A stretch of 64,000 nt of DNA, taken from positions 62,001 through 126,000 of IMG/VR virus record IMGVR_UViG_3300031951_000001. One strand, written 5' to 3'. Position numbers and translations under genes: made by a program. Below the pieces are notes generated by a model that searched no databases, was not told where the DNA came from, and saw only the letters and a program-made list of their open reading frames with translations. Of this stretch, positions 1,999 through 62,215 are shown piece after piece; positions within the stretch are counted from its first letter, which is position 1; each line of letters opens with the position of its first letter.

Positions 1999-2046
1999 TC
2001 TTTTTCAAGATATTTATAGTAGAATAAACTCTAACTATTCTTTACT

Positions 2047-2604
2047 ATGAAAAAACTTATTCTATTTTTTTTGGTTCTACTTCCAGTAACATTACTGGCT
2101 CAATTTACAACTATTAATCCTGATACGGTTTGTATTAACTCTCCGTTTGCAACTTATCAGGTTCCAAATACTCCAAACTATACTTACAATTGGACTGTTT
2201 CAGCACCTGGTGTTTTAACTGCAGGTCAAGGAACAAACGAGATTACCGTTGATTGGTCGGCAGCACCTGCTGGCGGTCCTATAGTAGATGCGATTAGTGT
2301 TTATGCAACAACGCCGGCAGGTTGTGACGGACCTCCGATTACAATGAATGTTTTTATTTTGGAAATATTACCAATTGTTCTACCACTTGATTTTTGTGAA
2401 GGTGACCCTTGTGAAGATTTGGTGGCAACACCAGCTGGTGGAGTATTCACAGGACCAAATATTGTTAACGGTCAGTATTGTCCGCAAACTGCGGGAACTG
2501 AAACGGTGACTTACACCATAACTGAGGCGGGATGCACATTTACTGCGACAGCTGATATGACCGTCTATCCAATTCCTGTCTTGGACAACATTTCTCATGA
2601 CTAA
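2047..2604 (+). CDS. secreted Ig/PKD-like repeat protein
   Basis: Signal peptide ending LLA-Q; YNWTV..GQGTNEITVDW; ATPAGGVFTGP; ends IPVLDNISHD. Confidence 0.7.
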   Translation: MKKLILFFLVLLPVTLLAQFTTINPDTVCINSPFATYQVPNTPNYTYNWTVSAPGVLTAGQGTNEITVDWSAAPAGGPIVDAISVYATTPAGCDGPPITMNVFILEILPIVLPLDFCEGDPCEDLVATPAGGVFTGPNIVNGQYCPQTAGTETVTYTITEAGCTFTATADMTVYPIPVLDNISHD

Positions 2605-2606
2605 TA

Positions 2607-3179
2607 ATGAAACAAATAAAAACACTTTTGTTGTTTTTGTTGGTCATGATTGTTTCAGGACAAGACCAAAAGATAGACATATGCGAAGACGAATCTAAAA
2701 CAGAATATACGTATTCGATAGAGTCTAATACACCAAATACAACATTTTATTGGTACGTAGATGGTATCTATCATTTTGGACAAACCCTGACCGTCAATTG
2801 GGAAACTTATTCTCCTGGAGTCCATACAATTAAAGTTTATGGAAAAAGTGATGGATGTAGGTCAAACCCGATGGAGTTTAAAGTTTTCATTGGGGAATGT
2901 TCTTCAATCTATATTCCAAATGCTTTTACTCCAAACGATGATGGGTTTAACGATACTTGGTTTCCCCAAGGAACAGGATGGGAAAGTATAGAAGTATTAG
3001 TATTTGACAGATGGGGGGTACTTGTATTTAAGTCAGTTGACCCAAAAGGACAATGGATTGGTAACTTTAGAGGTGGAGAATATTACGTTCAAAATGATGT
3101 CTACGAATATAAGGTTACTTGGAAGGGTATTGACCGAGAACCTGAAATAATTTTTGGTCATGTTACAGTTGTTAGGTAA
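2607..3179 (+). CDS. secreted protein with gliding-motility-associated (T9SS type B) C-terminal domain
   Basis: Signal peptide; IYIPNAFTPNDDGFND..VFDRWG..W.G..VY.Y..GHVTVVR signature. Confidence 0.85.
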   Translation: MKQIKTLLLFLLVMIVSGQDQKIDICEDESKTEYTYSIESNTPNTTFYWYVDGIYHFGQTLTVNWETYSPGVHTIKVYGKSDGCRSNPMEFKVFIGECSSIYIPNAFTPNDDGFNDTWFPQGTGWESIEVLVFDRWGVLVFKSVDPKGQWIGNFRGGEYYVQNDVYEYKVTWKGIDREPEIIFGHVTVVR

Positions 3180-8935: not shown

Positions 8936-10528
8936 ATGGATAAAAAAATAAAAATTTTAATTTTATCGTCATTGGTCATAATGTCGGTATTTTTCATGGT
9001 TAAAACTGCGGTTTTAATCGAAATTATATCTAGCTCAAAATTAACAAGAGGAACGGAATATGTTTGTTTTTTATTTTTTATTCCTGTTTTTTACAATTTA
9101 ATTAGACACTACATTAAAACTAATAGGTTATATAATCAGTTTAAAGAATTTGAAAATTTTGTTGATACCTCAGTACTGGTTAGTAAGGCTGATAAGAATG
9201 GTAAGATAACATATGTTAACCAAAAATTCAGTGAAGTGTCAGGGTGGAGTTTAGAAGACGCCGCAGGTAAAGACCACCGAATAGTTAACTCAGGATTTCA
9301 TCCCAAAGAAATGTGGGAGGAAATGTATAAAACAACAATCAAAGATAAAAAAATATGGAATGCTGTCGTAACTAACAAAGCAAAGGATGGTCATCTATAT
9401 TGGGTTGATTCATATATTAAAGCCGAATTTGAAGAAAATGGAGACCTAAAAGGTTTTATGTCAATAAGATATGATGTTTCAGAAGTTAAGAAAAAAGAAC
9501 TTGAGATTAGAAACAGAATGAATGCCATCAATCAATCTAATGCGGTTATTGAGTTTGATTTGAGTGGTAATATAATGTATGCCAATAAAAATTTCTGTGA
9601 TACTATGGGATATACTATGGAAGAAATTGTGGGAAAACATCATAGTATATTTTTAAATGAGGAGTATTCAAAGTCACAGGAGTATAAAGAATTTTGGGAT
9701 ACTTTAAGAAGTGGTGATTTCATATCTGCTCAATTTATGAGAATTAAAAAGAATGGTGATGAAATTTGGTTACAAGCCACATATAACCCAATCTTTGATA
9801 ATGATGGTAAAGTTATTCGAATTATGAAAATTGCGATTGATATTACTGACAAAGTTTTACAATCCCAAGAGATAGAAAAAAAGAATACTTATTTGGAACA
9901 TGCCGCAAAAATATTGAGACACGACATGCACTCGGGTATTAACACTTACATGCCGAGGGGGTTAAGTTCTTTGGAGAGAAGATTAAAAACTGAAGACATT
10001 GAGAATTTAAAAATTGAAGCTCCGATTAAAATGATTAAGGAGGGATTAAGACACTCACAAAAAGTATATAAGGGTGTTTATGAATTTACCAATTTGGTTA
10101 AAAAGGATGTTGTGTTAAATAAAGCTGAATGTAATTTAAGAGACATATTAAATGATTATCTATCATCAACCGCATATCATAGTCAGGTTATTATTGAAGA
10201 ATTACCAACCATAGAAGTTAATGAAGCATTATTCTGTACTGCGGTAGATAACTTAATTAGGAATGGATTGAAGTACAATGATTCTGAATCAAAATTTGTA
10301 AAAATATACATGGAAGGTGATGAGTTAATGGTTCAGGACAATGGACGAGGTATAACTCAAGAAGATTTCGACCACTTATCAAAACCATACACAAGAAAAG
10401 AAGGACAAAAAGAGTCAGGAACTGGACTCGGATTAAACATATGTGTGGCGATATTACAAGAACACAAGTTTTTGGTAAGATGCGAGAAAAATGAGATAGG
10501 AACTAAACTGAAAATAAAAATAAAATAA
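8936..10528 (+). CDS. membrane-anchored PAS-PAS sensor histidine kinase
   Basis: Two N-terminal TM segments; two PAS/PAC domains; H-box LRHDMH, N-box NLIRNGLKY, G1 DNGRGI, G2 GTGLGL. Confidence 0.9.
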   Translation: MDKKIKILILSSLVIMSVFFMVKTAVLIEIISSSKLTRGTEYVCFLFFIPVFYNLIRHYIKTNRLYNQFKEFENFVDTSVLVSKADKNGKITYVNQKFSEVSGWSLEDAAGKDHRIVNSGFHPKEMWEEMYKTTIKDKKIWNAVVTNKAKDGHLYWVDSYIKAEFEENGDLKGFMSIRYDVSEVKKKELEIRNRMNAINQSNAVIEFDLSGNIMYANKNFCDTMGYTMEEIVGKHHSIFLNEEYSKSQEYKEFWDTLRSGDFISAQFMRIKKNGDEIWLQATYNPIFDNDGKVIRIMKIAIDITDKVLQSQEIEKKNTYLEHAAKILRHDMHSGINTYMPRGLSSLERRLKTEDIENLKIEAPIKMIKEGLRHSQKVYKGVYEFTNLVKKDVVLNKAECNLRDILNDYLSSTAYHSQVIIEELPTIEVNEALFCTAVDNLIRNGLKYNDSESKFVKIYMEGDELMVQDNGRGITQEDFDHLSKPYTRKEGQKESGTGLGLNICVAILQEHKFLVRCEKNEIGTKLKIKIK

Positions 10529-10968: not shown

Positions 10969-11648
10969 TAAAATTTACCCCTGAAATAAAAAAAGAATTA
11001 ATTACCTTATCTGAAACAAAAAATTTATTTTTGGAAGGAAACATTGTTAAGGTAATTGATTCTGATGGGGATGATAATTTTAAAGAATACCTTAAAAAGT
11101 GTGGGGAAAGGGATACCGCAAATCGTAAGAAAAGGCTCGATATTACCAAACAAATTCAGACACAAAACAAAGAGCTATCTGACTTAAATGACGAGAATCA
11201 AAAAATATTAGAGGAGTTACAGTCAACCCTAAAAGAAGTTGAGGACTCCAAGATGACATTTGAGGTTCAAAACAGAGAATTAAACGAGTGGAAAGCCGAT
11301 AATATAAGATTAACCGAAGAACTAACAGTTGAGATGGTTAAATCCGAACAGGCGAGAGTGGATGCCGAAAAGGCAAAACAGAATGCTGAAAATGACTTGG
11401 ATGTACTTCAAAAGAAAACTCAATTTGAGTTAATCAATACAATTGTTAGAGTGGCATTATTTGTAATAATCGGTGTTGGTATTACTACCACGGCATTATA
11501 TACTGTTGCGTTATTTACAAACCAAGACACCCAAATAATAGGTTCAACTTGGAGTAATATGTTTGGTATCTTACTTACTAATGCGTTTAGTATAGTCGGA
11601 ACAATAATGGGTGTTAAATACGCATCAGAAAAACCAAAGAAGAATTAG
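10965..11648 (+). CDS. coiled-coil protein with two C-terminal TM helices
   Basis: Long heptad region then two hydrophobic segments; ATGA overlap with the receiver gene. Confidence 0.75.
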   Translation: MIKFTPEIKKELITLSETKNLFLEGNIVKVIDSDGDDNFKEYLKKCGERDTANRKKRLDITKQIQTQNKELSDLNDENQKILEELQSTLKEVEDSKMTFEVQNRELNEWKADNIRLTEELTVEMVKSEQARVDAEKAKQNAENDLDVLQKKTQFELINTIVRVALFVIIGVGITTTALYTVALFTNQDTQIIGSTWSNMFGILLTNAFSIVGTIMGVKYASEKPKKN

Positions 11649-11995
11649 TCATTAGTCATATAATCTTGGAAAATTCTTTTCTCAACAAGATTACCTTCCA
11701 TATCATACATCCACCCTTCGTATTTTCTTCCCTTAACATATTTGACTTGTGATATTTTGATACCGAATGGTGAATATGTAACCCATATTCCATCTTTTCT
11801 ACCCTCATCATAATGACCCACAGAAAATATACTACCATTATCGTAATATGCGGTCCACTCACCGGTTTTTAGATTATTTGATAGATGACCTTTCTGTTCG
11901 ATTTGACCCTTCTCATTTCTAAATAAAACTTCTTCTACTTGTGAATAACCTACAACCTGTAGGAACATAAACACCAAAAAAACAATCTGTCTCAT
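11645..11995 (-). CDS. secreted MORN-variant repeat (YwqK-like) protein
   Basis: Signal peptide; GEWTAYYDNG and GRKDGIWVTY repeats. Confidence 0.7.
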   Translation of the reverse strand: MRQIVFLVFMFLQVVGYSQVEEVLFRNEKGQIEQKGHLSNNLKTGEWTAYYDNGSIFSVGHYDEGRKDGIWVTYSPFGIKISQVKYVKGRKYEGWMYDMEGNLVEKRIFQDYMTND

Positions 11996-12086
11996 AATAT
12001 TAAGGATATATTATAAATAGATTAAGGAAATGTTAAGTAATATTAACAATTTTGACTATCGAAAAATTTAACATACATATTAGTGT

Positions 12087-12326
12087 ATGAAAACAATTCT
12101 TATATCAGTATTTTTTAGAATCATTTTTTTAGATTCACAAACGGACGAAACTTTGACAGGTGTTAAAGTTGAAACTAATCAGGGTGTATATTTTTCTAAT
12201 TTGGATGGTGAAGTTTTTATACCAACAGAGGAAGAAGTTCTATCTGTAAGTTATGTTTCTTACGAAACAAAAAATGGTGTCACCCTTTCGAATGACACCA
12301 TTATGTCTTTGAGTCAAATTCAGTAA
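12087..12326 (+). CDS. small carboxypeptidase-regulatory-like domain protein
   Basis: DSQTDETLTGVKV..SNLDG..VSYVSYE pattern. Confidence 0.55.
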   Translation: MKTILISVFFRIIFLDSQTDETLTGVKVETNQGVYFSNLDGEVFIPTEEEVLSVSYVSYETKNGVTLSNDTIMSLSQIQ

Positions 12327-12329
12327 TTT

Positions 12330-12497
12330 TTACTTTTTGAAAGAATTTTTATACTCCTCGGTACCAAATTTTTTCCATTCCCAATTCCCGTAAAAGTCGG
12401 GATTTTCAACTGAACATTCACCTGAAGATTTGTATTCGGATAAGAACTTATCCGACATTTCTTTGGTGTATCTATTTTTGACCTCAAAATTTTTCAT
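12330..12497 (-). CDS. small hypothetical protein (55 aa, not in ORF track)
   Basis: MKNFEVKNRY..FYGNWEWKKFG; abuts the stop of the upstream gene. Confidence 0.5.
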   Translation of the reverse strand: MKNFEVKNRYTKEMSDKFLSEYKSSGECSVENPDFYGNWEWKKFGTEEYKNSFKK

Positions 12498-13355
12498 TCA
12501 AAACTTATTTACATCACCGTAATTCATGTGTAATTCATCGTGTTCGGCTTTCATCATTTCGTAAGCTCGAGCCATTCGAGTCATTCCGATACCGCCACCA
12601 AATCTTTTGAAGAATTTGTGAGACAAGAATTCTTCCAATTCCTTCTCAACCCTTTCTTTACCAAACAATTCAAACAATTTGGCCGAATAACCACCATTTT
12701 CAATAGTATAGAACATTTCTCTCATTTCATCAACATCACAACTTCTTTCGGCCGAACCAATTGTTTCTTGACCATAAAGAATAACATCCACTTTGTTGAA
12801 TTTATCTCCCTCACCCGACTTCATATTCCAGAATGGGTTTGTTCTAACGGGGAAATTCTGTAATGACACTACACTACCTTTTTCATTCCACATTCTTGTT
12901 TCGTGCTCGTTCTCCAAAATCGGTACACCACCATATTCTTCACAAACATCGTCATAATTCACTTCAACAGGTGAATCAAAACCTAAAAACGCAAGTAATT
13001 CAGATTCTAATTTAAGTAATTCCTTCATACCACCCTTTGACTCGAACTCAAACATTGGGAAGATTAATTCGTGACGACCTGGGATTGGGTCTTTTTCTTG
13101 TCTGTACGATGTTGAGATACAGAACACACCTGGCCATTCAGGATTTTGTAACAATTCATACTCTAACCACATTTGACCTGTTTGTGGTAATGGCCAAATT
13201 TGACCTTGGTACTCAAACGTTGTGATTGAGTGTGGATTCTCACATGCTGCGAGAATTGATAATCTTGATTGGGTCGGAACCTCAAGAAAACCTTTGTTTA
13301 GAAAAAAGGTCCTCATCTTTTGGACCAACTCGTGATAAACTTTTGTGTTTTTCAT
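12498..13355 (-). CDS. stand-alone class IIb aaRS-like catalytic domain (AsnRS paralog; possible asparagine synthetase)
   Basis: Motif 1 FFLNKGFLEVPT, LPQTGQ, motif 2 SYRQE..GRH..FPMFEFE, ETIGSAER, motif 3 GGGIGMTR; no anticodon-binding OB domain. Confidence 0.8.
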   Translation of the reverse strand: MKNTKVYHELVQKMRTFFLNKGFLEVPTQSRLSILAACENPHSITTFEYQGQIWPLPQTGQMWLEYELLQNPEWPGVFCISTSYRQEKDPIPGRHELIFPMFEFESKGGMKELLKLESELLAFLGFDSPVEVNYDDVCEEYGGVPILENEHETRMWNEKGSVVSLQNFPVRTNPFWNMKSGEGDKFNKVDVILYGQETIGSAERSCDVDEMREMFYTIENGGYSAKLFELFGKERVEKELEEFLSHKFFKRFGGGIGMTRMARAYEMMKAEHDELHMNYGDVNKF

Positions 13356-13368
13356 ATTACTTTAGGGT

Positions 13369-13393
13369 AAAAAAAAACCTCCCGAAGGAGGTT
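13369..13393 (-). terminator. leader (attenuator) terminator 13 nt upstream of the AsnRS-like start codon
   Basis: Minus strand AACCTCC-TTCG-GGAGGTT followed by T7; no long upstream minus-strand gene to terminate. Confidence 0.75.
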
Positions 13394-13397
13394 ACGT

Positions 13398-13427
13398 TTA
13401 TTTATTATTTATTAAATTCTTGTTCAT
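13398..13427 (-). CDS. putative Asn-rich leader peptide MNKNLINNK
   Basis: ATG AAC AAG AAT TTA ATA AAT AAT AAA TAA; starts 6 nt after a TATTTAT motif and ends 4 nt before the terminator stem. Confidence 0.5.
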   Translation of the reverse strand: MNKNLINNK

Positions 13428-13499
13428 TTTGAAATAAATACGAGATAAAGTTGAAAAAATAAAGTAATCACTTAAAATTTTTTTTGAGTATTTATTAGT

Positions 13500-14540
13500 A
13501 TGAGAGTTAGATTATCGGAAGAACAATTAAAAAAGTTGATAAAAGAGGATTTGGGAGTGTCCAGAGCGGCATTAGCATATACCAATTTAATCTATTCTAA
13601 ATTAGAATCTGAAGTAAAAGAATTTTTAGACACAAAAAAAAGTGGCAAATACAAATTTACGATTTCAGTAGATGAAATGTCATATATCTATCAATCTAGT
13701 ATGGATGACTTTATCGAATTACCTATTGAACAGATTGAAATTACTCTAACTTTTGTGAGCTCTCCCAGAAAAAAAGCCAATGTTCCATTCACAACTGGTG
13801 GAGCGGCCCAATCAATACAAAAAGAATATCTAAAAGGGTCTTATTTAAAAGAACCATCATTTGAATTACCAAAATATATTTTAGAGGAAGTTGACCAAAC
13901 TATTGTTGCCAGAATGGACCTGTCTGTAGAAATAAGAAGTTCTTATGATGACAGTATGAGTGAATCGGTATTATTTGATTTTAGAGATACGATTACACAT
14001 GAATGTAACCACTTGTATGAATTCTACAAAAGAGCTGAAAGGGGTGCTAAACAGATGAATGTAACTTTAAGTTGGGCTGGTAACAAAAATGTTAATGTAA
14101 AAAGGGAAATTTTCAGTGTTTGGCAAAATTTTATGGATTATGTATATAATTCAGAACCGTATGAGGTTAATGCCAAAGTACAAGAAGCATTTAGTTTGAG
14201 GTCTAGAATGCCTTTTGAAGAATTCAAAAATACAAAGTATTGGAGAGGGGCTAATAACCTAAAGAATTTCAATTCAGATGTGTTTATTGAAACATTATTA
14301 TCTAAAATAGGTGAATTATCACCAGGTAAAGAAGTCAGTATTTTCAATAATCTATATAAGTGGTTTTTAACTGATTACTACAAATGGATGAAACTTCACA
14401 ATGAAAAACCAGCAAGATTCATCGATAACTCAAAAAATTTGGTAGATTTGATTAGTAAATTCCAACCAAGAATCAATAAAGCGGGTGAAACCTTATTAAA
14501 AAAATATATGAGGTTGTATGCTTTAGAACCGGAAATCTAA
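13500..14540 (+). CDS. HExxH zincin-like protein with N-terminal LSEEQL leader
   Basis: THECNHLYE..YEVNA; begins MRVRLSEEQLKKLIKE. Confidence 0.65.
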   Translation: MRVRLSEEQLKKLIKEDLGVSRAALAYTNLIYSKLESEVKEFLDTKKSGKYKFTISVDEMSYIYQSSMDDFIELPIEQIEITLTFVSSPRKKANVPFTTGGAAQSIQKEYLKGSYLKEPSFELPKYILEEVDQTIVARMDLSVEIRSSYDDSMSESVLFDFRDTITHECNHLYEFYKRAERGAKQMNVTLSWAGNKNVNVKREIFSVWQNFMDYVYNSEPYEVNAKVQEAFSLRSRMPFEEFKNTKYWRGANNLKNFNSDVFIETLLSKIGELSPGKEVSIFNNLYKWFLTDYYKWMKLHNEKPARFIDNSKNLVDLISKFQPRINKAGETLLKKYMRLYALEPEI

Positions 14541-14541
14541 T

Positions 14542-14584
14542 TGTCAGATATCCTGACATTTTGTCATACTTTTATTTTTGGCAC
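14542..14584 (+). promoter_or_regulatory. candidate operator upstream of dnaK
   Basis: Overlapping inverted repeats TGTCAG-N5-CTGACA and TGACA-TTT-TGTCA, then TGGCAC. Confidence 0.35.
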
Positions 14585-14657
14585 ATTATTTAATATTTTG
14601 TTGTCGGACTTGATTCCATAAAATAAACAACATATATTTCTTAAAAATAAAAGTTAT

Positions 14658-16523
14658 ATGGGTAAAATTATAGGTATTGATTTAGGAACAACAAATTCGT
14701 GTGTTGCCGTTATGGAAAGCGGCGAACCTGTTGTGATTACAAACAGTGAAGGAAAAAGAACCACCCCTTCAATTGTAGGTTTTGCGAATGGTGGTGAGAG
14801 AAAGATTGGTGACCCGGCTAAACGTCAATCAGTTACTAATCCTGACAAAACAGTTTATTCTATCAAACGTTTCATGGGAGGCAGTTTTGATGAGAGTAAA
14901 AAAGAAATTAAACGAGTACCTTACAAGGTAGTTAAAGGTGACGGTAATACTCCTCGTGTCCAAATTGAAGACAGGAAGTATTCACCACAAGAAATCTCGG
15001 CAATGGTTCTCCAAAAGATGAAACAAACTGCTGAAGATTATTTGGGCGAAACTGTAACAGAGGCGGTTATCACGGTACCGGCGTATTTCAACGACGCTCA
15101 ACGTCAGGCGACTAAAGAAGCTGGTGAAATCGCGGGTCTTACCGTTAGACGTATAATTAACGAACCAACTGCGGCGGCACTTGCTTACGGTCTTGACAAA
15201 CAAGGTAAAGACATGAAAGTTGTGGTGTTCGACTGTGGTGGTGGTACTCACGACGTATCAGTCCTTGAATTGGGTGATGGTGTATTTGAAGTATTGGCAA
15301 CTGATGGTGACACTCACCTCGGTGGTGATGACTTCGATAACGTAATCATTGACTGGCTCGTTAAAGAATTCCAAGATGAAAACGGACTTGATTTGACCAA
15401 AGACCCAATGGCACTTCAACGTCTCCGTGAAGGAGCTGAAAAGGCAAAAATTGAGTTGTCAACTTCACCATCAACAGAAATCAACCTACCTTACATTATG
15501 CCGGTAGATGGTGTTCCAAAACACCTTGTTCGCACAATGACAAAGGCAAAGTTTGAGCAACTTGTTGACAGTTTGGTACAACGTACAATCGCACCGTGTA
15601 AGTCAGCTCTCAAAAATGCCGGTTTGAAACCTGCGGACATTGATGAAATTATCTTGGTTGGAGGCTCAACTCGTATTCCGGCAATCCAAGAAGCGGTTAA
15701 AAAATTCTTCGGTAAAGAACCATCAAAAGGAGTTAATCCTGACGAAGTTGTGGCACTCGGTGCAGCAATTCAGGGAGGTGTACTCGCAGGGGATGTTAAA
15801 GATGTATTGTTACTTGATGTGACTCCACTATCACTTGGTATTGAAACTCAAGGTGGTGTATTCACAAAACTCATCGAGGCAAACACAACAATCCCAACTA
15901 AAAAGTCCCAAGTGTTCTCAACGGCGGTTGATAATCAACCATCAGTAGAGATTCACGTTCTACAAGGGGAGAGAGCAATGGCTCAAGACAACCGAACAAT
16001 TGGTCGTTTCATTTTGGACGGACTACCACCAGCAATGAGAGGTGTTCCACAAGTTGAAGTTACTTTTGACATCGATGCCAACGGTATTATCAATGTATCG
16101 GCGATGGATAAGGCAACCAACAAACAACAATCAATCCGTATTGAATCATCGTCAGGTCTTTCAAAAGAAGAAATCGAAAAGATGAAACAAGATGCGGAAA
16201 TGAACGCAGAGGCGGACAAAAAATCACGAGAAGATGCCGACGCTATTAACCAAGCGGATTCTTTGGTATTCCAATCCGAAAAAACCATGAAAGATTTGGA
16301 GGAGAAGATGACCGAAGAACAAAAAACCCAACTTGCTGAAGCAATATCAGAATTGAAGACATCAATCGCTGAAAAGGATATTGAAAAGGTAAGAAACGGT
16401 ACTGGTAAATTGGCGTTGGTCGCTCAAACGATTACTCAAGGAATTTATAGTCAAGGAGACGAAGGTCAAGTTAGCGACCCTGAAGTTTCAGACGTAGATT
16501 TTGAAGAAGTAAAACCAAGTTAA
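14658..16523 (+). CDS. dnaK: molecular chaperone DnaK (Hsp70)
   Basis: [50 protein letters not shown]. Confidence 0.98.
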
Positions 16524-20014: not shown

Positions 20015-20077
20015 ATTATTTGTTTAACACTAAAATATAAGTGAAAAATTATTATTGGTCAAAGAGTATTTATTGAT

Positions 20078-28450: not shown

Positions 28451-28495
28451 CTAATTTTTTTTGACTATTGGTTCGAGTTGTGATATTTATTAAAT

Positions 28496-36079: not shown

Positions 36080-36925
36080 ATTATCCATCAGGATGTTGAT
36101 GATGAGACCTTAGGGTTGATTCTGAGACAACTGTAAAAGATAATGGGCCGTGTATGGTCCTTAAATAAACTACGAAAGTAGGATAAAGTGACCTCCCCCG
36201 TGTTGAGGAGGTTGCGGTTTCGAAAGGAACTCGAGTACACAAGTGGGATATCACAAGACCTTTAGTACCGAGGGTAACACTGTAGGGAAAGTGGTCAGGT
36301 GACTTGGCAAAGTGGATTGTCAAGTTGAGGTGGGAACACCAACAAGAATAACCCATAGGAATCAAGTAAGAAATGTGGCTTCCAACTACAATATTGCGGA
36401 TTCCAATACAGAAGGGTACTTAAAACCGAAAGGTAAGGTAGAGAACGAGTGGTGTCGCTACTACCCCTAAGGAAGACCTACCAAGGTCTCTTTATGAAGT
36501 AATCTGAAAGTATGGAGATAGGGATATCTCACGGAGTAGTTTAGTATTCTGTCGCTCAAAAGGAGACGGAACTTACGGTGGACCACTACTCTGACACATC
36601 CACGACACAATCTTAAATTATTAAAAAATAATTAAAGGAAAAGTGTCCATCAGGTTTAAGTGAAAGGTCACTACCTAATCACTGGCTGTCAGTGGTACAG
36701 AAAGACCCCAAGTCCGACTGTAGTTTTACGAAAAACCTTTAATCCCGCAAGGATGAACTGGGGTGGCAACCTCGGAAAGAGTTAAGTAATAAGAGAGTAA
36801 CTTAAACCTCAAGGAGTGGTAAACCTAAAAGACCGTGACTGAGAAATACTTCTCAAAAGGAAGTGGATACGAAGGGAAACAATAATCCTTCAAAAGGTTC
36901 TCACAGAAAGCTGTAATCTCAGGCT
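36080..36925 (+). ncRNA. giant structured RNA, probably GOLLD
   Basis: About 845 nt, GC-richer than its flanks, many GNRA-capped hairpins, no credible ORF, directly upstream of a tRNA in a phage; family call from size and context only. Confidence 0.65.
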
Positions 36926-36941
36926 TCGTTTAATCTTACAT

Positions 36942-37014
36942 CGCAACTTAGAGCAGAGGCCAGCTCGTCAGGCTCATAACCTGAAGGTCGGAGGTTCGAA
37001 TCCTTCAGTTGCAA
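36942..37014 (+). tRNA. initiator-type tRNA-fMet(CAT)
   Basis: C1-A72 mismatch; anticodon arm TCAGG-CTCATAA-CCTGA; T-arm GGAGG-TTCGAAT-CCTTC. Confidence 0.85.
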
Positions 37015-37099
37015 CAAATTTACAGGTGAGCTTGTCTCACCTTTTTTTATTCTTATATTTCTTATACCATTCAGGTATAAACAATAATTCTTTTATTTT

Positions 37100-38550: not shown

Positions 38551-38557
38551 CTTACGG

Positions 38558-38932
38558 TGGAGGTACGGGGAGTCGAACCCCTTCCTACTCATCTTAACTA
38601 CTAAGCCCTACATGTTTAGGTCAACATCGCTTCTCAATGTTCCGAAATATTGGTTTTTGAGCTCTCAAAACCACAAACGAGTTGTGTTTCTTTTCGGGTA
38701 GAAACCACACCACAGTACGAGCTTCTGTTCCAAGGTTGTATGCTTACCGACCCGTTTTGTATCCCAATCCTAGATTAGGCTACTGAAATGTTCTCTTCAG
38801 TACGGATAAGACCAACTGCAGAGAGTTTGTTGATAACGTTGCCGTTTATCGTGTGAACCAGTTTTACAAGGTTAGTTCAGCCTCGACATGCTCCGAGTAA
38901 TTAACTATGCTAGTCAATTCCAAGTTACCCCC
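38558..38932 (-). ncRNA. ssrA: tmRNA
   Basis: 5' GGGGGTAACTTGGAATTGAC; 3' GGTTCGACTCCCCGTACCTCCA with G3-U70; tag frame 38843-38775 after ATAAAC. Confidence 0.93.
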
Positions 38933-41358: not shown

Positions 41359-43389
41359 TTATGACCCCTTCTTCTTTCTTACCTTTTTAGTCTCGATAAT
41401 TTTGACATTACCTTCTTCCGCGACTAACTCATATTCCTTTTCTTCGGATATGTTTCCTTTTAATACTTCTTCAGAAATATAATCTTCTATTTTATCTTGG
41501 ATTGCCCTTTTAAGTGGACGAGCTCCATATGTTTCATCAAAACCAACTTCAGATATTAAATCGATAATTGAATCCGTGAAATTAATTTGATATTTCAAAC
41601 CACTTAATCTTTTAGATAATTTATTCAATTCAATTTTAACAATCTCGGCAATTTGTTCTTTCTTGAGATTATTGAAGACAATTATTTCATCGATTCGGTT
41701 AAGGAATTCAGGTGCGAAGAATTTCTTCAATTCTTTTTTCAATATATCCCTTTTGTATTCTTCTTCAATGTACGTATTTGTTCCAGATTTAAATCCAATC
41801 CCCGTACCAAAATCTTGTAACATTTTAGCCCCAATGTTTGAGGTCATAATAATGACACAATTCTTGAAGTTGATTTTTCTACCCAAACCATCGGTGATAT
41901 GACCATCATCCAATACTTGTAACAGTGCTGAAAAAATATCTTTGTTTGCCTTTTCAATTTCGTCAAACAATACCACAGAATAAGGTTTGTTTTTCACTTG
42001 TTCTGTAAGTTGTCCTCCTTCATCATAACCAACATATCCGGGAGGAGCTCCAATCAAACGAGAGATTGTATGTTTTTCTTGGAATTCAGACATATCAACT
42101 CTGATAAGGCTGTCCTCACTACCAAATATTTCTTTGGCAAGTTGTTTTGCGAGTAATGTTTTACCAACACCAGTAGAGCCCAAGAATATAAATGACCCAA
42201 TTGGTTTGTTAGGGTCCTTGATACCCAAACGATTTCTTCTGATTGATTTTGAAATTTTGATTACCGCTTCTTCTTGACCAATAACTTTTCCTGAAAGATT
42301 TTTCTCTAATTCTGTCAGTAATTTTGTTTCATCGGAGTTTAGTTTTGAGATTGGAATTTTGGTCATATTTGATACAACCTCATATACCAATTCTTCGGTC
42401 ACATCTCGTTTTGATAACAACAAATCACTCTCAAATTTCTTTTTCTCATCTTCAAGTTTTGATAGGATTTTCTTTTCCTTATCTCTCAAATTTGCGGCTT
42501 CCTCATAGTTTTGTTTTTTAACAACATCTAACTTTTGTTGTTTAATATCTTGAGCCTGCTTCTTCAAATCATCAATAATCTCCGGCATCTTAATCTCAAC
42601 TTGACTACGAGCACCAACTTCATCAATGATGTCAAAGGCTTTATCAGGAAACTCACGGTCTGTAATATATCGTTCGGCCAAATCAACGCACAAACTTAAA
42701 ATTGGGTCTGAATATGATACTTTGTGATATGTTTCATATTTGTCCTTTGTATTTTTTAGAATTTGAAGTGTTTCGGCCTTTGTTGCGGCATCCACGACAA
42801 CCTTTTGGAAACGACGCTCAAGGGCCCCATCCTTTTCAAAGTTTTTACGATATTCATCATTGGTTGTTGCCCCAACACATTGAATTTCTCCACGAGCAAG
42901 TGCCGGTTTGAAGATATTGGAAGCATCTAATGACCCCGACGAGTTACCGGCTCCTACAATAGTGTGAATTTCGTCAATGAAGACAATAATATTTGGATTA
43001 CTTTGTAACTCCTCAATAATCACCTTCATACGTTCTTCAAACTGACCACGATACTTTGTACCGGCAACAATTGAAGTCATATCTAAAGATACAATTCTTT
43101 TGTCCTGTAGATTTCTTGGGCAATCTCCTTCAAAGATTTTAATTGCTAATCCTTCGACAATTGCGGTTTTACCACAACCTGGCTCACCAATGATAATTGG
43201 ATTGTTCTTTTTTCTTCTTGAAAGAATTTGAGCTATCCTTGTTATTTCTCGTTCTCTACCGACCACAGGGTCAATTTTACCTTGTTCTGCAAGTTTAATT
43301 AAATCCCTACTAAAATTATCTAGTACAGGGGTACCACTATCACTAGTTTGTTTTGATTTTTTTCCATCATTATCCGCAGATTCTATCAT
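41359..43389 (-). CDS. ClpC/ClpB-family AAA+ ATPase lacking the Clp N-domain
   Basis: Walker A GEPGCGKT and GSTGVGKT; FIDEIH; UVR-like YEEAANLRD; GAPPGYVGY; GARPL. Confidence 0.93.
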   Translation of the reverse strand: MIESADNDGKKSKQTSDSGTPVLDNFSRDLIKLAEQGKIDPVVGREREITRIAQILSRRKKNNPIIIGEPGCGKTAIVEGLAIKIFEGDCPRNLQDKRIVSLDMTSIVAGTKYRGQFEERMKVIIEELQSNPNIIVFIDEIHTIVGAGNSSGSLDASNIFKPALARGEIQCVGATTNDEYRKNFEKDGALERRFQKVVVDAATKAETLQILKNTKDKYETYHKVSYSDPILSLCVDLAERYITDREFPDKAFDIIDEVGARSQVEIKMPEIIDDLKKQAQDIKQQKLDVVKKQNYEEAANLRDKEKKILSKLEDEKKKFESDLLLSKRDVTEELVYEVVSNMTKIPISKLNSDETKLLTELEKNLSGKVIGQEEAVIKISKSIRRNRLGIKDPNKPIGSFIFLGSTGVGKTLLAKQLAKEIFGSEDSLIRVDMSEFQEKHTISRLIGAPPGYVGYDEGGQLTEQVKNKPYSVVLFDEIEKANKDIFSALLQVLDDGHITDGLGRKINFKNCVIIMTSNIGAKMLQDFGTGIGFKSGTNTYIEEEYKRDILKKELKKFFAPEFLNRIDEIIVFNNLKKEQIAEIVKIELNKLSKRLSGLKYQINFTDSIIDLISEVGFDETYGARPLKRAIQDKIEDYISEEVLKGNISEEKEYELVAEEGNVKIIETKKVRKKKGS

Positions 43390-43436
43390 AACTGTTTTTT
43401 TTCTAATAATAACCATTATTTTTTAAAAAAAAAGTT

Positions 43437-56032: not shown

Positions 56033-56103
56033 TCAAAAAATTATCAATAGTTGTAAAAGGAGGGGAAACCCTCCTTTTTTTTATTCTGATATATTTATCA
56101 GAT

Positions 56104-61633: not shown

Positions 61634-62215
61634 ATGAGGTTTATTTTATTCTCGATTTTATTATTTTTACAAATTAGTGTTTTTTCACAGTTAAGAGATT
61701 CGGTCTATGTTAAGACTGAAATTTTTAATATTGTCTATTCTGAAAAATTACAACAACCTAAGTGGGTTGAATATAACGTGATATGTCACGATGGTAAAAT
61801 ATCTAGAAAAGGGTTAGATTTTTATCCTATAAAGGGAATAGTTACTTCTACAAATGAAGATTATGAAAATAATATTTATGATAAGGGCCATCTAGCACCC
61901 GCAGCGGACTTCAATTGTAATCAAGACTATCTAAAACAAACATTTTCTTACTTGAATTGTGTTCTACAACACGAAAGATTAAATAGAGGGGTTTGGAGAT
62001 TACTAGAATCTCGTGAGAGAGAACTCTCAAAACAATATAAGGTATCTGTTGAAATAAGAATTAATTACAGTAAAAATTCAAAAGTCCTGTCAACAGGGGC
62101 CACAGTTCCCGATTCTTTTACTAAGACAATTATGTATAATAATAAAAAAGAAAAATATTTCTTCAAAAATGAAGAACCGAAATCATCTGACCCTAATTTA
62201 TATAGGGTTAATTGA
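61634..62215 (+). CDS. secreted DNA/RNA non-specific endonuclease
   Basis: Signal peptide; YDKGHLAPAADF, TFSYLN..LNRG.W..LE. Confidence 0.9.
   Translation: MRFILFSILLFLQISVFSQLRDSVYVKTEIFNIVYSEKLQQPKWVEYNVICHDGKISRKGLDFYPIKGIVTSTNEDYENNIYDKGHLAPAADFNCNQDYLKQTFSYLNCVLQHERLNRGVWRLLESRERELSKQYKVSVEIRINYSKNSKVLSTGATVPDSFTKTIMYNNKKEKYFFKNEEPKSSDPNLYRVN

Follow-up and report, generated by a model that had tools for sequence, protein, structure and literature searches.

An asparagine-codon-rich leader and terminator precede an AsnRS-like gene in a jumbo phage and its relatives

We analyzed a 64,000-nucleotide stretch of DNA (here called the window; positions 62,001 to 126,000 of IMG/VR virus record IMGVR_UViG_3300031951_000001) from a jumbo phage of freshwater Bacteroidota. 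On the minus strand, a promoter-like box is followed by a nine-codon upstream open reading frame (uORF) containing four Asn codons, an intrinsic terminator, and a gene for a protein resembling asparaginyl-tRNA synthetase (AsnRS). The gene is followed by a small ORF that is probably cotranscribed and by a terminator at the end of the operon, and the upstream neighbor is divergent. The features of the locus are listed in the table.

Table. Positions of features at the leader and its surroundings (window coordinates).
Positions	Strand	Feature	Details
13500-14540	+	Divergent neighboring gene	346 aa
13487-13499	+	Divergent promoter box (AGTATTTA)	5 nt before the ATG of the 346-aa neighbor
13433-13440	-	Promoter -7 box-like element	Contains the TATTTA core; TATTTAT at 13440-13434, then 6 nt
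13398-13427	-	uORF MNKNLINNK plus stop	ATG 13427-13425; Asn codons 13424-13422, 13418-13416, 13409-13407 and 13406-13404; TAA 13400-13398
13394-13397	-	Interval between uORF and hairpin	4 nt
13376-13393	-	Terminator hairpin	AACCUCC, UUCG loop, GGAGGUU; 7 bp
13365-13377	-	U9 tract followed by ACCC	U9 at 13377-13369, the first two pairing in the stem
13356-13368	-	Interval between T run and main ATG	13 nt
13356-13364	-	Short A-rich spacer before the main AUG	No SD, no promoter box
12498-13355	-	AsnRS/AspRS-like gene	285 aa; ATG at 13355
12330-12497	-	ORF directly after the gene	55 aa; probably cotranscribed
12273-12302	-	Terminator at the end of the operon	

A first-pass annotation of the sequence had described this leader, and rereading the minus strand confirmed its observation to the base. 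The hairpin has a predicted stability of -10.5 kcal/mol (z = -2.9 against shuffled sequences). In order to test whether such a uORF could be expected by chance, we examined all 617 ATG ORFs of 6 to 15 codons on both strands of the window and found that only this one has at least 4 Asn codons or at least 40% Asn. The combination of box, uORF, terminator, and gene was found nowhere else in about 0.8 Mb of related phage DNA, and no similar uORF-terminator modules keyed to other amino acids were found before other genes. Complete genomes of these phages were not scanned for a tRNA-Asn, nor were host Bacteroidota scanned for Asn leaders before asnS, asnA, and asnB. The 55-aa ORF is conserved only in the closest relatives; elsewhere, the gene is followed directly by its own terminator.

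The 285-aa product matches the Pfam family tRNA-synt_2 (PF00152; E = 1.4e-12) and corresponds to a class IIb aminoacyl-tRNA synthetase (aaRS) catalytic core without an anticodon-binding domain. It aligns from about residue 140 of AsnRS onward and scores 23.5 bits against the NCBIfam asnS model, well below the cutoff of 414. The residues of motif 2 (YRxE) and motif 3 (GxGxGxxR) are invariant in 24 homologues. In profile comparisons the best PDB matches are AsnRS (3e-10), and an AF2 model, built from an alignment without GenBank phage rows (pLDDT 82.6), gave AsnRS and AspRS cores as the top Foldseek hits. Asparagine synthetase A, including the archaeal AsnRS-like form (PDB 3P8T), and EpmA/PoxA are likewise class IIb cores without an anticodon-binding domain, but the phage protein is closer to true AsnRS/AspRS cores than to 3P8T (5e-3) or EpmA. 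It has no hit to the AsnA Pfam family; as enzymatic activity was not assayed, these matches leave undecided whether it could act as an asparagine synthetase. The protein belongs to PHROG 29758, of unknown function. In 39 of 42 marine cyanophage loci, the homologue is followed at once by an odd, long tRNA with the Asn anticodon (GTT).

Conservation of the uORF and terminator before homologous phage genes had been named beforehand as a test of the proposal that this leader is an attenuator. We compared 88 distinct homologous phage loci, and the leader passed. A terminator lies within 75 nt of the gene start in 74 of the 88. Alignment of the hairpins with MAFFT and RNAalifold gave no consensus because the stems do not align by sequence; however, stem-anchored pair counts showed 15 distinct, fully compensated stems, with several pair types at each position. 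The module stays with the gene whatever the upstream neighbor or its orientation. A few clades keep the terminator without a recognizable Asn uORF, and other phages carry the same gene behind quite different leaders (a hairpin plus A10, or a T4 late promoter). Cellular homologues (CPR, DPANN, Weeksellaceae, and Coxiellaceae) often have an upstream terminator, some with T7-8 followed by GCC, but have no consistent Asn uORF.

We next asked where transcription of the leader might begin; a start downstream of the hairpin had been named in advance as grounds for rejecting an attenuator. The TATTTA core is invariant in 42 of 42 aligned leaders, with a T-rich block 16 to 19 nt upstream, and resembles the Bacteroidetes TAnnTTTG -7 box, whose positions we took from PMC6847099 and PMC9723704. 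The exact 10-mer of the promoter region is not overrepresented in the window, but the shorter box core is the general gene-start signal: the same kind of box ends 4 to 7 nt before the ATG of 13 of 60 long ORFs, and 0 of 49 genes have an SD motif. The predicted transcription start thus lies upstream of the hairpin, about 3 nt before the uORF AUG, so the uORF would be leaderless or nearly so. This start is inferred, and flavobacteria rarely use leaderless mRNAs: the figure is 5.5% in F. psychrophilum, and 87% of F. johnsoniae transcripts have leaders longer than 10 nt (PMC6847099; PMC9723704). No -7 box lies between the terminator and the gene in the window or its relatives, from which we infer that the gene depends on read-through.

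In order to define the uORF blind to its end, we took only the first ATG after the -7 box. The ORF so defined stays open up to the terminator in 50 of 56 leaders, against 5 and 9 in the other two frames, and in these 50 the stop codon falls between -14 and +15 nt relative to the start of the stem. Its ATG sits behind the box at the same spacing as the ATGs of bona fide genes in this SD-less phage, and synonymous changes occur at Asn and Pro codons within a family. The sequence between box and terminator is otherwise hypervariable. One alternative is that the uORF encodes a functional micropeptide, for example a substrate or partner of the ligase-like enzyme, with the hairpin setting only the ratio of peptide to enzyme. 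The order of small ORF, leaky terminator, and enzyme gene resembles precursor-enzyme operons such as some RiPP operons, and aaRS-like ligases can acylate non-tRNA acceptors (PMC9437257). However, the peptides are 8 to 26 residues long, cannot be aligned between families, share only their Asn content, and contain no conserved recognition motif, and part of the C terminus is dictated by the stem sequence. We consider this alternative very unlikely.

Across 42 distinct uORFs, the peptides are 24% Asn, against 6 to 7% in real proteins of the same phages and 6.9% in the first 14 residues of 510 real ORFs, which face the same initiation constraints; the dipeptide NN occurs in 64% against 3.5%. Asn is clearly the most enriched residue against composition-preserving shuffles (z = 6.8; 0 of 2,000 shuffles reached the observed count), whereas Arg is weakly enriched (z = 2.5) and Lys is not (z = -1.7). 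Asn positions and tandem NN are conserved within families while neighboring residues vary. These data bear on the possibility that there is no amino acid sensing, the hairpin being a constitutive leaky terminator that sets a low, fixed enzyme level. The short ORF would then be a by-product of a promoter placed as for any leaderless gene, or would be kept translated only to modulate termination, and its Asn richness would reflect selection for A-rich, unstructured RNA free of stops and poly(A) runs. AAY is the obvious A-rich codon once AAA runs and stop codons are avoided, AAC/AAT usage equals that of ordinary genes (and so does not help with the direction of regulation), and the clades and phages noted above keep the terminator without an Asn uORF or carry the gene behind quite different leaders. 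However, Asn and not Lys is strongly enriched, and the enriched residue coincides with the cognate amino acid of the gene; we therefore regard this explanation as unlikely.

The terminators of these leaders are themselves unusual. They have T runs of 8 to 9 nt, with GCCC or ACCC after the run in 58% of cases (in most relatives the arrangement is U8 followed by GCCC), whereas among 387 other terminators of the same contigs none has GCC after the run and the T runs are shorter. The long U run and following G fit a prolonged polymerase pause at the decision point, given the G-10/Y-1/G+1 pause consensus, although this is an inference. A promoter followed closely by a strong terminator is also the layout of the lambda late operon (PR'-tR' with Q), so an antiterminator of phage or host loaded at the promoter might override the terminator; alternatively, the roughly 60-nt terminated transcript, with an A-rich 5' part, a hairpin, and a U tail, might be a functional small RNA in which the reading frame is incidental. 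Weak subthreshold Rfam hits are all to small RNAs of that shape. However, no Rfam family reaches its gathering score, the module is unique to this gene, and the hypervariability of the leader apart from frame, Asn codons, and stop position points to translation rather than a protein- or RNA-binding site, making these possibilities improbable.

The first-pass annotation had proposed that a ribosome stalled at Asn7-Asn8 covers the 5' arm of the hairpin, so that the enzyme is made only when Asn-tRNA is short, and that occlusion is direct because no antiterminator helix is evident. This interpretation is partly supported: the conserved Asn-rich leader holds, as does the absence of an antiterminator, but occlusion by that stalled ribosome is not supported. 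The leader up to the terminator loop folds at 0.0 kcal/mol in the window family, and the 5' arm has no alternative partner. A search for antiterminators elsewhere found only a weak pairing of the AUG region with the 5' arm in one family, with one compensatory change, too weak to build on; only some long leaders have extra hairpins, which do not overlap the terminator core. With Asn8 in the A site, the ribosome reaches only 13397-13394, ending 1 to 4 nt short of the first paired base at 13393, and Asn2 and Asn4 would stall it much earlier, about 30 nt upstream.

Across families, the last Asn codon lies anywhere from 0 to 31 nt before the stem. In about half of them, it lies within 13 nt of the extended stem, where a late stall could mask or destabilize the base of the terminator, and in families with NNP next to the stem a stalled ribosome would cover the whole 5' arm. 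In the other half it is 14 to 31 nt away, and uORFs that end inside the stem would give read-through under plenty, the opposite of what the starvation-induced model needs. A ribosome parked at the 5' end of read-through mRNA might instead protect it from 5'-end-dependent decay, as stalled ribosomes do for ermC mRNA, but this variant does not explain the specialized strong terminator. Induction at shortage of Asn-tRNA is favored by the match between the enriched residue, the enzyme family, and the tRNA-Asn linkage, and by the behavior of all known cognate-codon leaders (trp, his, leu, thr, pheA, and pheST), which induce at starvation. The response of read-through to Asn supply was not measured here; on geometry we consider the starvation-induced direction the less likely of the two, though possible.

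Because Asn codons are scattered from codon 2 to the stem, the only outcome common to all stalls is that the ribosome fails to reach the terminator, whereas the constrained feature is the stop codon, next to or inside the stem. Therefore, we hypothesize that the leader is a ribosome-mediated transcription attenuator keyed to Asn codons and built like a coupling attenuator. In this view, host-type RNA polymerase starts a few bases before the uORF AUG, at a Bacteroidetes-type -7 box, and a ribosome loads on the essentially leaderless uORF and follows the polymerase. If the ribosome keeps pace, it would lie over the 5' arm when the polymerase sits on the U tract, so that a ribosome finishing the uORF, rather than a stalled one, masks the terminator and the gene is transcribed; if it is delayed, the hairpin would form and transcription would stop. 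The two to seven Asn codons along the uORF would make that delay depend on the supply of Asn-tRNA(Asn), giving high read-through when Asn codons are decoded fast and low read-through when Asn-tRNA is scarce. The sequence comparison itself establishes conservation of the promoter box, of an open uORF reaching the terminator, of Asn enrichment, and of a covarying terminator, together with the exclusive link to this gene; in the absence of transcript or ribosome data, we infer the transcription start, translation of the uORF, ribosome-polymerase coupling, and the direction of the response. The shortest leaders are only 56 to 61 nt from AUG to release point, which leaves almost no time for a ribosome to load and catch up unless the polymerase pauses, and the proposed direction is antihomeostatic if the enzyme supplies Asn or Asn-tRNA, as its homology and tRNA-Asn linkage suggest. 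An Asn-decoding-sensitive, ribosome-mediated attenuator of either direction is well supported, with a probability of about 0.7; within that, we put about 0.6 on the direction proposed here, or about 0.42 for the full model.

The leader shares with the attenuators of amino acid operons and of pheST (trpL, hisL, leuL, thrL, pheL, and pheM) a short ORF enriched in codons of the amino acid related to the downstream gene, a peptide free to vary apart from those codons, and an intrinsic terminator with a long U run between ORF and gene, and pheST is the precedent for a synthetase gene. It differs from them in that there is no antiterminator or pause hairpin in the window and in most families, the regulatory codons are scattered rather than confined to one segment, the stop codon abuts the terminator itself, the uORF is predicted to be leaderless, the amino acid is Asn, and the setting is a phage. 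As in the pyrBI and pyrE (rph-pyrE) coupling attenuators of E. coli, the ORF ends just before, or runs through, a terminator with no alternative structure. In those systems a ribosome close behind the polymerase suppresses hairpin formation, and premature ribosome release or delay increases termination, as in the rph-1 effect on pyrE; this behavior has not been demonstrated here. In pyrBI/pyrE, however, the variable is polymerase speed, set by UTP at U-rich pause sites, and the targets are pyrimidine genes, whereas this leader is A-rich upstream of the hairpin with no U runs, its target is aaRS-like, and the variable would be ribosome speed at Asn codons; the resemblance is mechanistic only. 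The tnaC leader and other inducing leader peptides provide a precedent for switching a gene on when the amino acid is plentiful, but tnaC depends on a specific arrest peptide and on Rho, whereas here the peptides are hypervariable and the terminator is intrinsic. No cis-regulatory Rfam family matched the window at its gathering score, and in a permissive scan of 13250-13560 the best leader hit was Phe_leader (19.6 bits against 55), with no T-box hit. T-box, tRNA-mimicry autoregulation, and arrest-peptide models were rejected because the leader is too short, the loop sequences are not conserved and never look like an anticodon loop, and the peptides are hypervariable.

Ribosome-mediated attenuation is a textbook bacterial mechanism, but we found no description of it for asparagine or in a phage in Rfam 15 or in our literature searches, which also returned no prior description of this leader or of the enzyme's function. 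If the coupling model is correct, which we hold only tentatively, transcription of the phage gene would be licensed only while Asn codons are being decoded fast, an inverse, substrate-type logic implying that the enzyme consumes Asn, for example by charging a dedicated tRNA-like acceptor as in cyanophages, rather than supplying it. It would also be the first leader-peptide attenuator described in a phage and the first for asparagine. The leader is a widespread and very compact natural example, of about 60 nt, in abundant freshwater jumbo phages; it lacks the antiterminator thought to be essential and sits on a predicted leaderless uORF in a host phylum that does not use Shine-Dalgarno sequences, and so offers a minimal system for asking how a ribosome alone can decide termination. 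It would show that phages monitor the charging of a single tRNA species, and it gives a functional handle, asparagine, on a very large protein family of unknown function, PHROG 29758, with at least 8,000 close relatives and members also in CPR bacteria and DPANN archaea.

In order to test whether the first-pass annotation of a putative asparagine-sensing attenuator had described the leader correctly, we read the minus strand across the region, and every element it listed was found where it had been placed; the features are collected in the table below. The hairpin folds at -10.5 kcal/mol (z = -2.9 against shuffled sequences) and is listed as terminator-like by a consensus terminator scan, whereas the rest of the leader is predicted to be unstructured. 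The short ORF is already an outlier within the window: of 617 ATG ORFs of 6 to 15 codons on both strands, it is the only one with at least 4 Asn or at least 40% Asn.

Coordinates of the leader, its surroundings and other features mentioned in the text (window positions unless a locus handle is given; handles beginning with L denote fetched homologous loci)
Position	Strand	Feature
13440-13434	-	TATTTAT, followed by 6 nt
13427	-	ATG of the 9-codon uORF MNKNLINNK
13400-13398	-	Stop codon of the uORF, followed by 4 nt
13393-13376	-	Hairpin, 7 bp with a UUCG loop
13377-13369	-	Nine T, followed by 13 nt
13365-13377	-	U tract and the tetranucleotide after it (GCCC or ACCC in the leader terminators); equivalent position in L004-L164
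13355	-	ATG of the 285-aa AsnRS-like ORF
12330-12497	-	55-aa ORF starting at the stop of the AsnRS-like gene
13500-14540		Divergent upstream neighbour
11055-14855		Stretch identical to two IMG/VR contigs of 322 kb and 166 kb
36532-36925, with tRNA-Met at 36942-37015	+	Full-length GOLLD RNA (317 bits) immediately upstream of a tRNA-Met gene
38555-38932	-	tmRNA (94.6 bits, full model), not reported by ARAGORN
14658-16523, 41359-43416, 8936-10528		Full-length DnaK (992 bits to the equivalog), FtsH-like protease and PAS-domain histidine kinase
13487-13499, 20060-20077, 28478-28495, 56086-56103		Examples of the gene-start pattern (Bacteroidetes-type -7 box, no Shine-Dalgarno motif)
L081 3296-3382; L082 3304-3391; L246-L324 at about 2000-2095		tRNA with anticodon GTT after the AsnRS-like gene of marine cyanomyophages
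L018, L022, L030, L039, L041, L050 (about 2900-3000); L083 (about 2400-2455)		Second leader type before the same gene in other jumbo phages

The window is phage DNA, encoding a large terminase, a portal protein and a major head protein, together with DnaK, an FtsH-like protease, a PAS histidine kinase, a tmRNA, a GOLLD RNA and four tRNAs. In many relatives DnaK is the divergent neighbor of the AsnRS-like gene. None of 49 long ORFs has a Shine-Dalgarno motif, and in 13 of 60 long ORFs a box of the form TAHHTTT(G/A) or nnTATTTA ends 4 to 7 nt before the ATG. This resembles the Bacteroidetes sigma-A -7 element TAnnTTTG, which spans -12 to -5 (PMC6847099, PMC9723704). Therefore, those genes are predicted to be leaderless or nearly so, an unusually high share for a Bacteroidota system, although this frequency is predicted from spacing alone and leaderless mRNAs are a minority in the two flavobacteria studied (PMC6847099, PMC9723704). 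The closest hits of the gene in cellular bins are in Cytophagales and Flavobacteriales, from which we infer that a Bacteroidota host is likely.

The 285-aa protein is a class IIb aminoacyl-tRNA-synthetase catalytic core, matching Pfam tRNA-synt_2. Searching the PDB with a family profile gave AsnRS as the best hit (3e-10), followed by AspRS and LysRS, whereas the archaeal AsnRS-like asparagine synthetase 3P8T was hit only at 5e-3. An AlphaFold model (pLDDT 82.6) matches AsnRS and AspRS cores. The protein has no anticodon-binding domain, and it scores far below the curated asnS cut-off. Stand-alone AspRS/AsnRS-like cores work as asparagine synthetases (PMC9437257), but the activity of this protein is unknown, and PHROGs lists the family as of unknown function. 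The family is very large, with at least 8000 close relatives, and homologues at about 60% identity are scattered over CPR bacteria, DPANN archaea, Weeksellaceae, Chitinophagaceae, Coxiellaceae and Babeliales (cellular genome contigs L165-L244), several of which NCBI names "transposase." About 20 of these have an upstream hairpin followed by T7-8 and GCC/GCCC, like the phage leaders, but no Asn uORF. The 55-aa ORF that follows the gene in the window has no family match and is conserved only in the closest relatives.

A second, independent link to asparagine was found in marine phages. In cyanophages P-SSM7 and P-SSM2, and in 39 of 42 related marine contigs, the homologue is followed within 6 to 15 nt by an 83- to 92-nt tRNA with anticodon GTT. 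This tRNA has a long variable arm and U at position 37, which suggests a dedicated enzyme-tRNA pair in marine cyanomyophages. The freshwater homologues have no such tRNA nearby.

The first-pass annotation had named conservation of an Asn-rich uORF and terminator before homologous phage genes as a test of its proposal. We fetched 160 related viral loci, which gave 88 distinct upstream regions. Of the 88, 74 have a hairpin plus T-run within 75 nt of the gene start, with 15 distinct stems, all fully paired, and two to five pair types at each position. The upstream neighbor differs in identity and orientation between loci, so the module belongs to the AsnRS-like gene. Upstream lies a conserved box with a TATTTA core that is invariant in 42 of 42 leaders and a T-rich block 16 to 19 nt further up; an ATG usually follows 6 to 7 nt after the core, though the gap is about 17 to 19 nt in one clade. 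We defined the uORF only as the first ATG after the box, blind to where it ends. On that definition, its stop falls between -14 nt of the stem and the stem's end in 50 of 56 leaders, whereas the +1 and +2 frames do so in 5 and 9. Three clades keep the terminator without a recognizable Asn uORF, and other phages drive the same gene from different leaders. One of these, in other jumbo phages, has a GATATATAC-like box, a G+C-rich hairpin, exactly A10, then TTTCT and the ATG, with no uORF; another is a T4-type late promoter. The complete module is found only before this gene in about 0.8 Mb scanned, and no Rfam family matches. Factor-dependent antitermination, or a function of the transcript as a small RNA, was retained only as an unlikely alternative.

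The encoded peptides are 8 to 26 residues long and cannot be aligned between about 21 families (for example, MKNNKPNNK, MMNNNRNLNINYKKS, MKKLQNNGDNNPF and MDINLNNIYNF); we consider a functional micropeptide very improbable. They are 24% Asn, compared with 6.9% for the first 14 residues of 510 real ORFs from the same contigs and 6.1% for whole proteins, and NN occurs in 64% of the peptides against 3.5% of real N-termini. In composition-preserving shuffles, Asn is clearly the most enriched residue, with 71 observed against 34.7 ± 5.3 and 0 of 2000 shuffles reaching the observed count, whereas Arg is only weakly enriched (z = 2.5) and Lys is not enriched (z = -1.7). Within families the Asn positions are kept while neighbors change, and synonymous AAT/AAC and CCG/CCA changes occur. 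A constitutive leaky terminator without Asn sensing is a doubtful but not dismissed alternative. These data answer the caveat, raised at the outset, that AAT codons are common in AT-rich DNA, and the conservation test is passed.

We next asked what the geometry of the leader allows. As the first-pass annotation had remarked, no antiterminator exists in the window family, in which the leader up to the terminator loop folds at 0.0 kcal/mol. Some long leaders elsewhere have extra structure: those of loci L026 and L161 have strong internal hairpins (-12 kcal/mol); in family G the AUG region can pair with the terminator 5' arm and loop, with one compensatory change; and the family with TPNNY peptides has a small hairpin just upstream of the terminator whose loop changes from AAC to GAAA (the leaders concerned are L026 and L161; L043, L045 and L120; and the L017/L059 family). 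The annotation had further proposed that a ribosome stalled at Asn7-Asn8 covers the 5' arm and that the enzyme is made only when Asn-tRNA is short. Assuming that a ribosome covers about 9 to 12 nt beyond the first base of its A-site codon, a ribosome waiting at Asn8 (13406) reaches 13397-13394, short of the first paired base at 13393, whereas one with the stop codon in its A site reaches 13391-13388, inside the 5' arm. Asn2 and Asn4 would stall a starved ribosome about 30 nt upstream. Across families the Asn codon nearest the stem lies from 0 to 31 nt before it, with no preferred distance, and every family also has Asn codons too far upstream to mask the stem. The feature that is held constant is the position of the stop codon. 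The interpretation in the first-pass annotation is thus supported only in part.

The distance from the uORF AUG to the release point is 56 to 100 nt. Taking the allowed spacing as roughly 26 to 34 nt from P site to RNA 3' end, in the shortest leaders a ribosome as close to the polymerase as structures allow would be on the last sense codon just as the polymerase reaches the end of the U tract. The leader terminators are also special, in that their T-runs are 8 to 9 long and are followed by GCCC or ACCC in 58% of cases, whereas none of 387 other terminators in the same contigs has GCC there and their T-runs are mostly 5 to 7. The tetranucleotide GCCC or ACCC right after the U tract is specific to the leader terminators, and its role is unexplained. 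A G after the last U, with G about ten bases upstream, fits the consensus elemental pause, and we infer, as no more than a guess, that it prolongs the decision window. Together, this is the design of the pyrBI and pyrE attenuators, where a closely following ribosome prevents the hairpin and a lagging ribosome allows it; here, ribosome speed at Asn codons would be the variable. The parsimonious reading is that delay at any Asn codon increases termination, so that read-through is high when Asn-tRNA is plentiful. The terminator, box, open frame and Asn enrichment rest on direct sequence comparison, whereas the host, the leaderless starts, the pause and the regulatory response are inferred. Transcripts, translation and regulation were not measured, and ribosome-polymerase coupling in this host is unknown. 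We estimate a probability of about 0.7 for an Asn-decoding-sensitive, ribosome-mediated attenuator of either sign.

The element would work like a leader-peptide attenuator but lacks one defining feature of the trp/his class, the antiterminator, and it shares the defining geometry of the pyrBI/pyrE class but not its signal. No asparagine leader and no phage leader-peptide attenuator turned up in Rfam 15 or in searches of the literature. Ribosome-mediated attenuation itself is a textbook bacterial mechanism.

Both signs were kept under consideration. The classical sign, with induction at Asn-tRNA shortage, is the less likely of the two but could hold in two ways: late stalls could mask the stem, as about half the families have an Asn codon within 13 nt of it, or a ribosome parked at the 5' end could stabilize the mRNA. 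The coupling (inverse) sign, which we favor only tentatively, is anti-homeostatic if the enzyme supplies Asn or Asn-tRNA, and every known cognate-codon leader induces at starvation. It would make sense if the enzyme consumes Asn, for example, by loading a dedicated acceptor such as the cyanophage tRNA(GUU).
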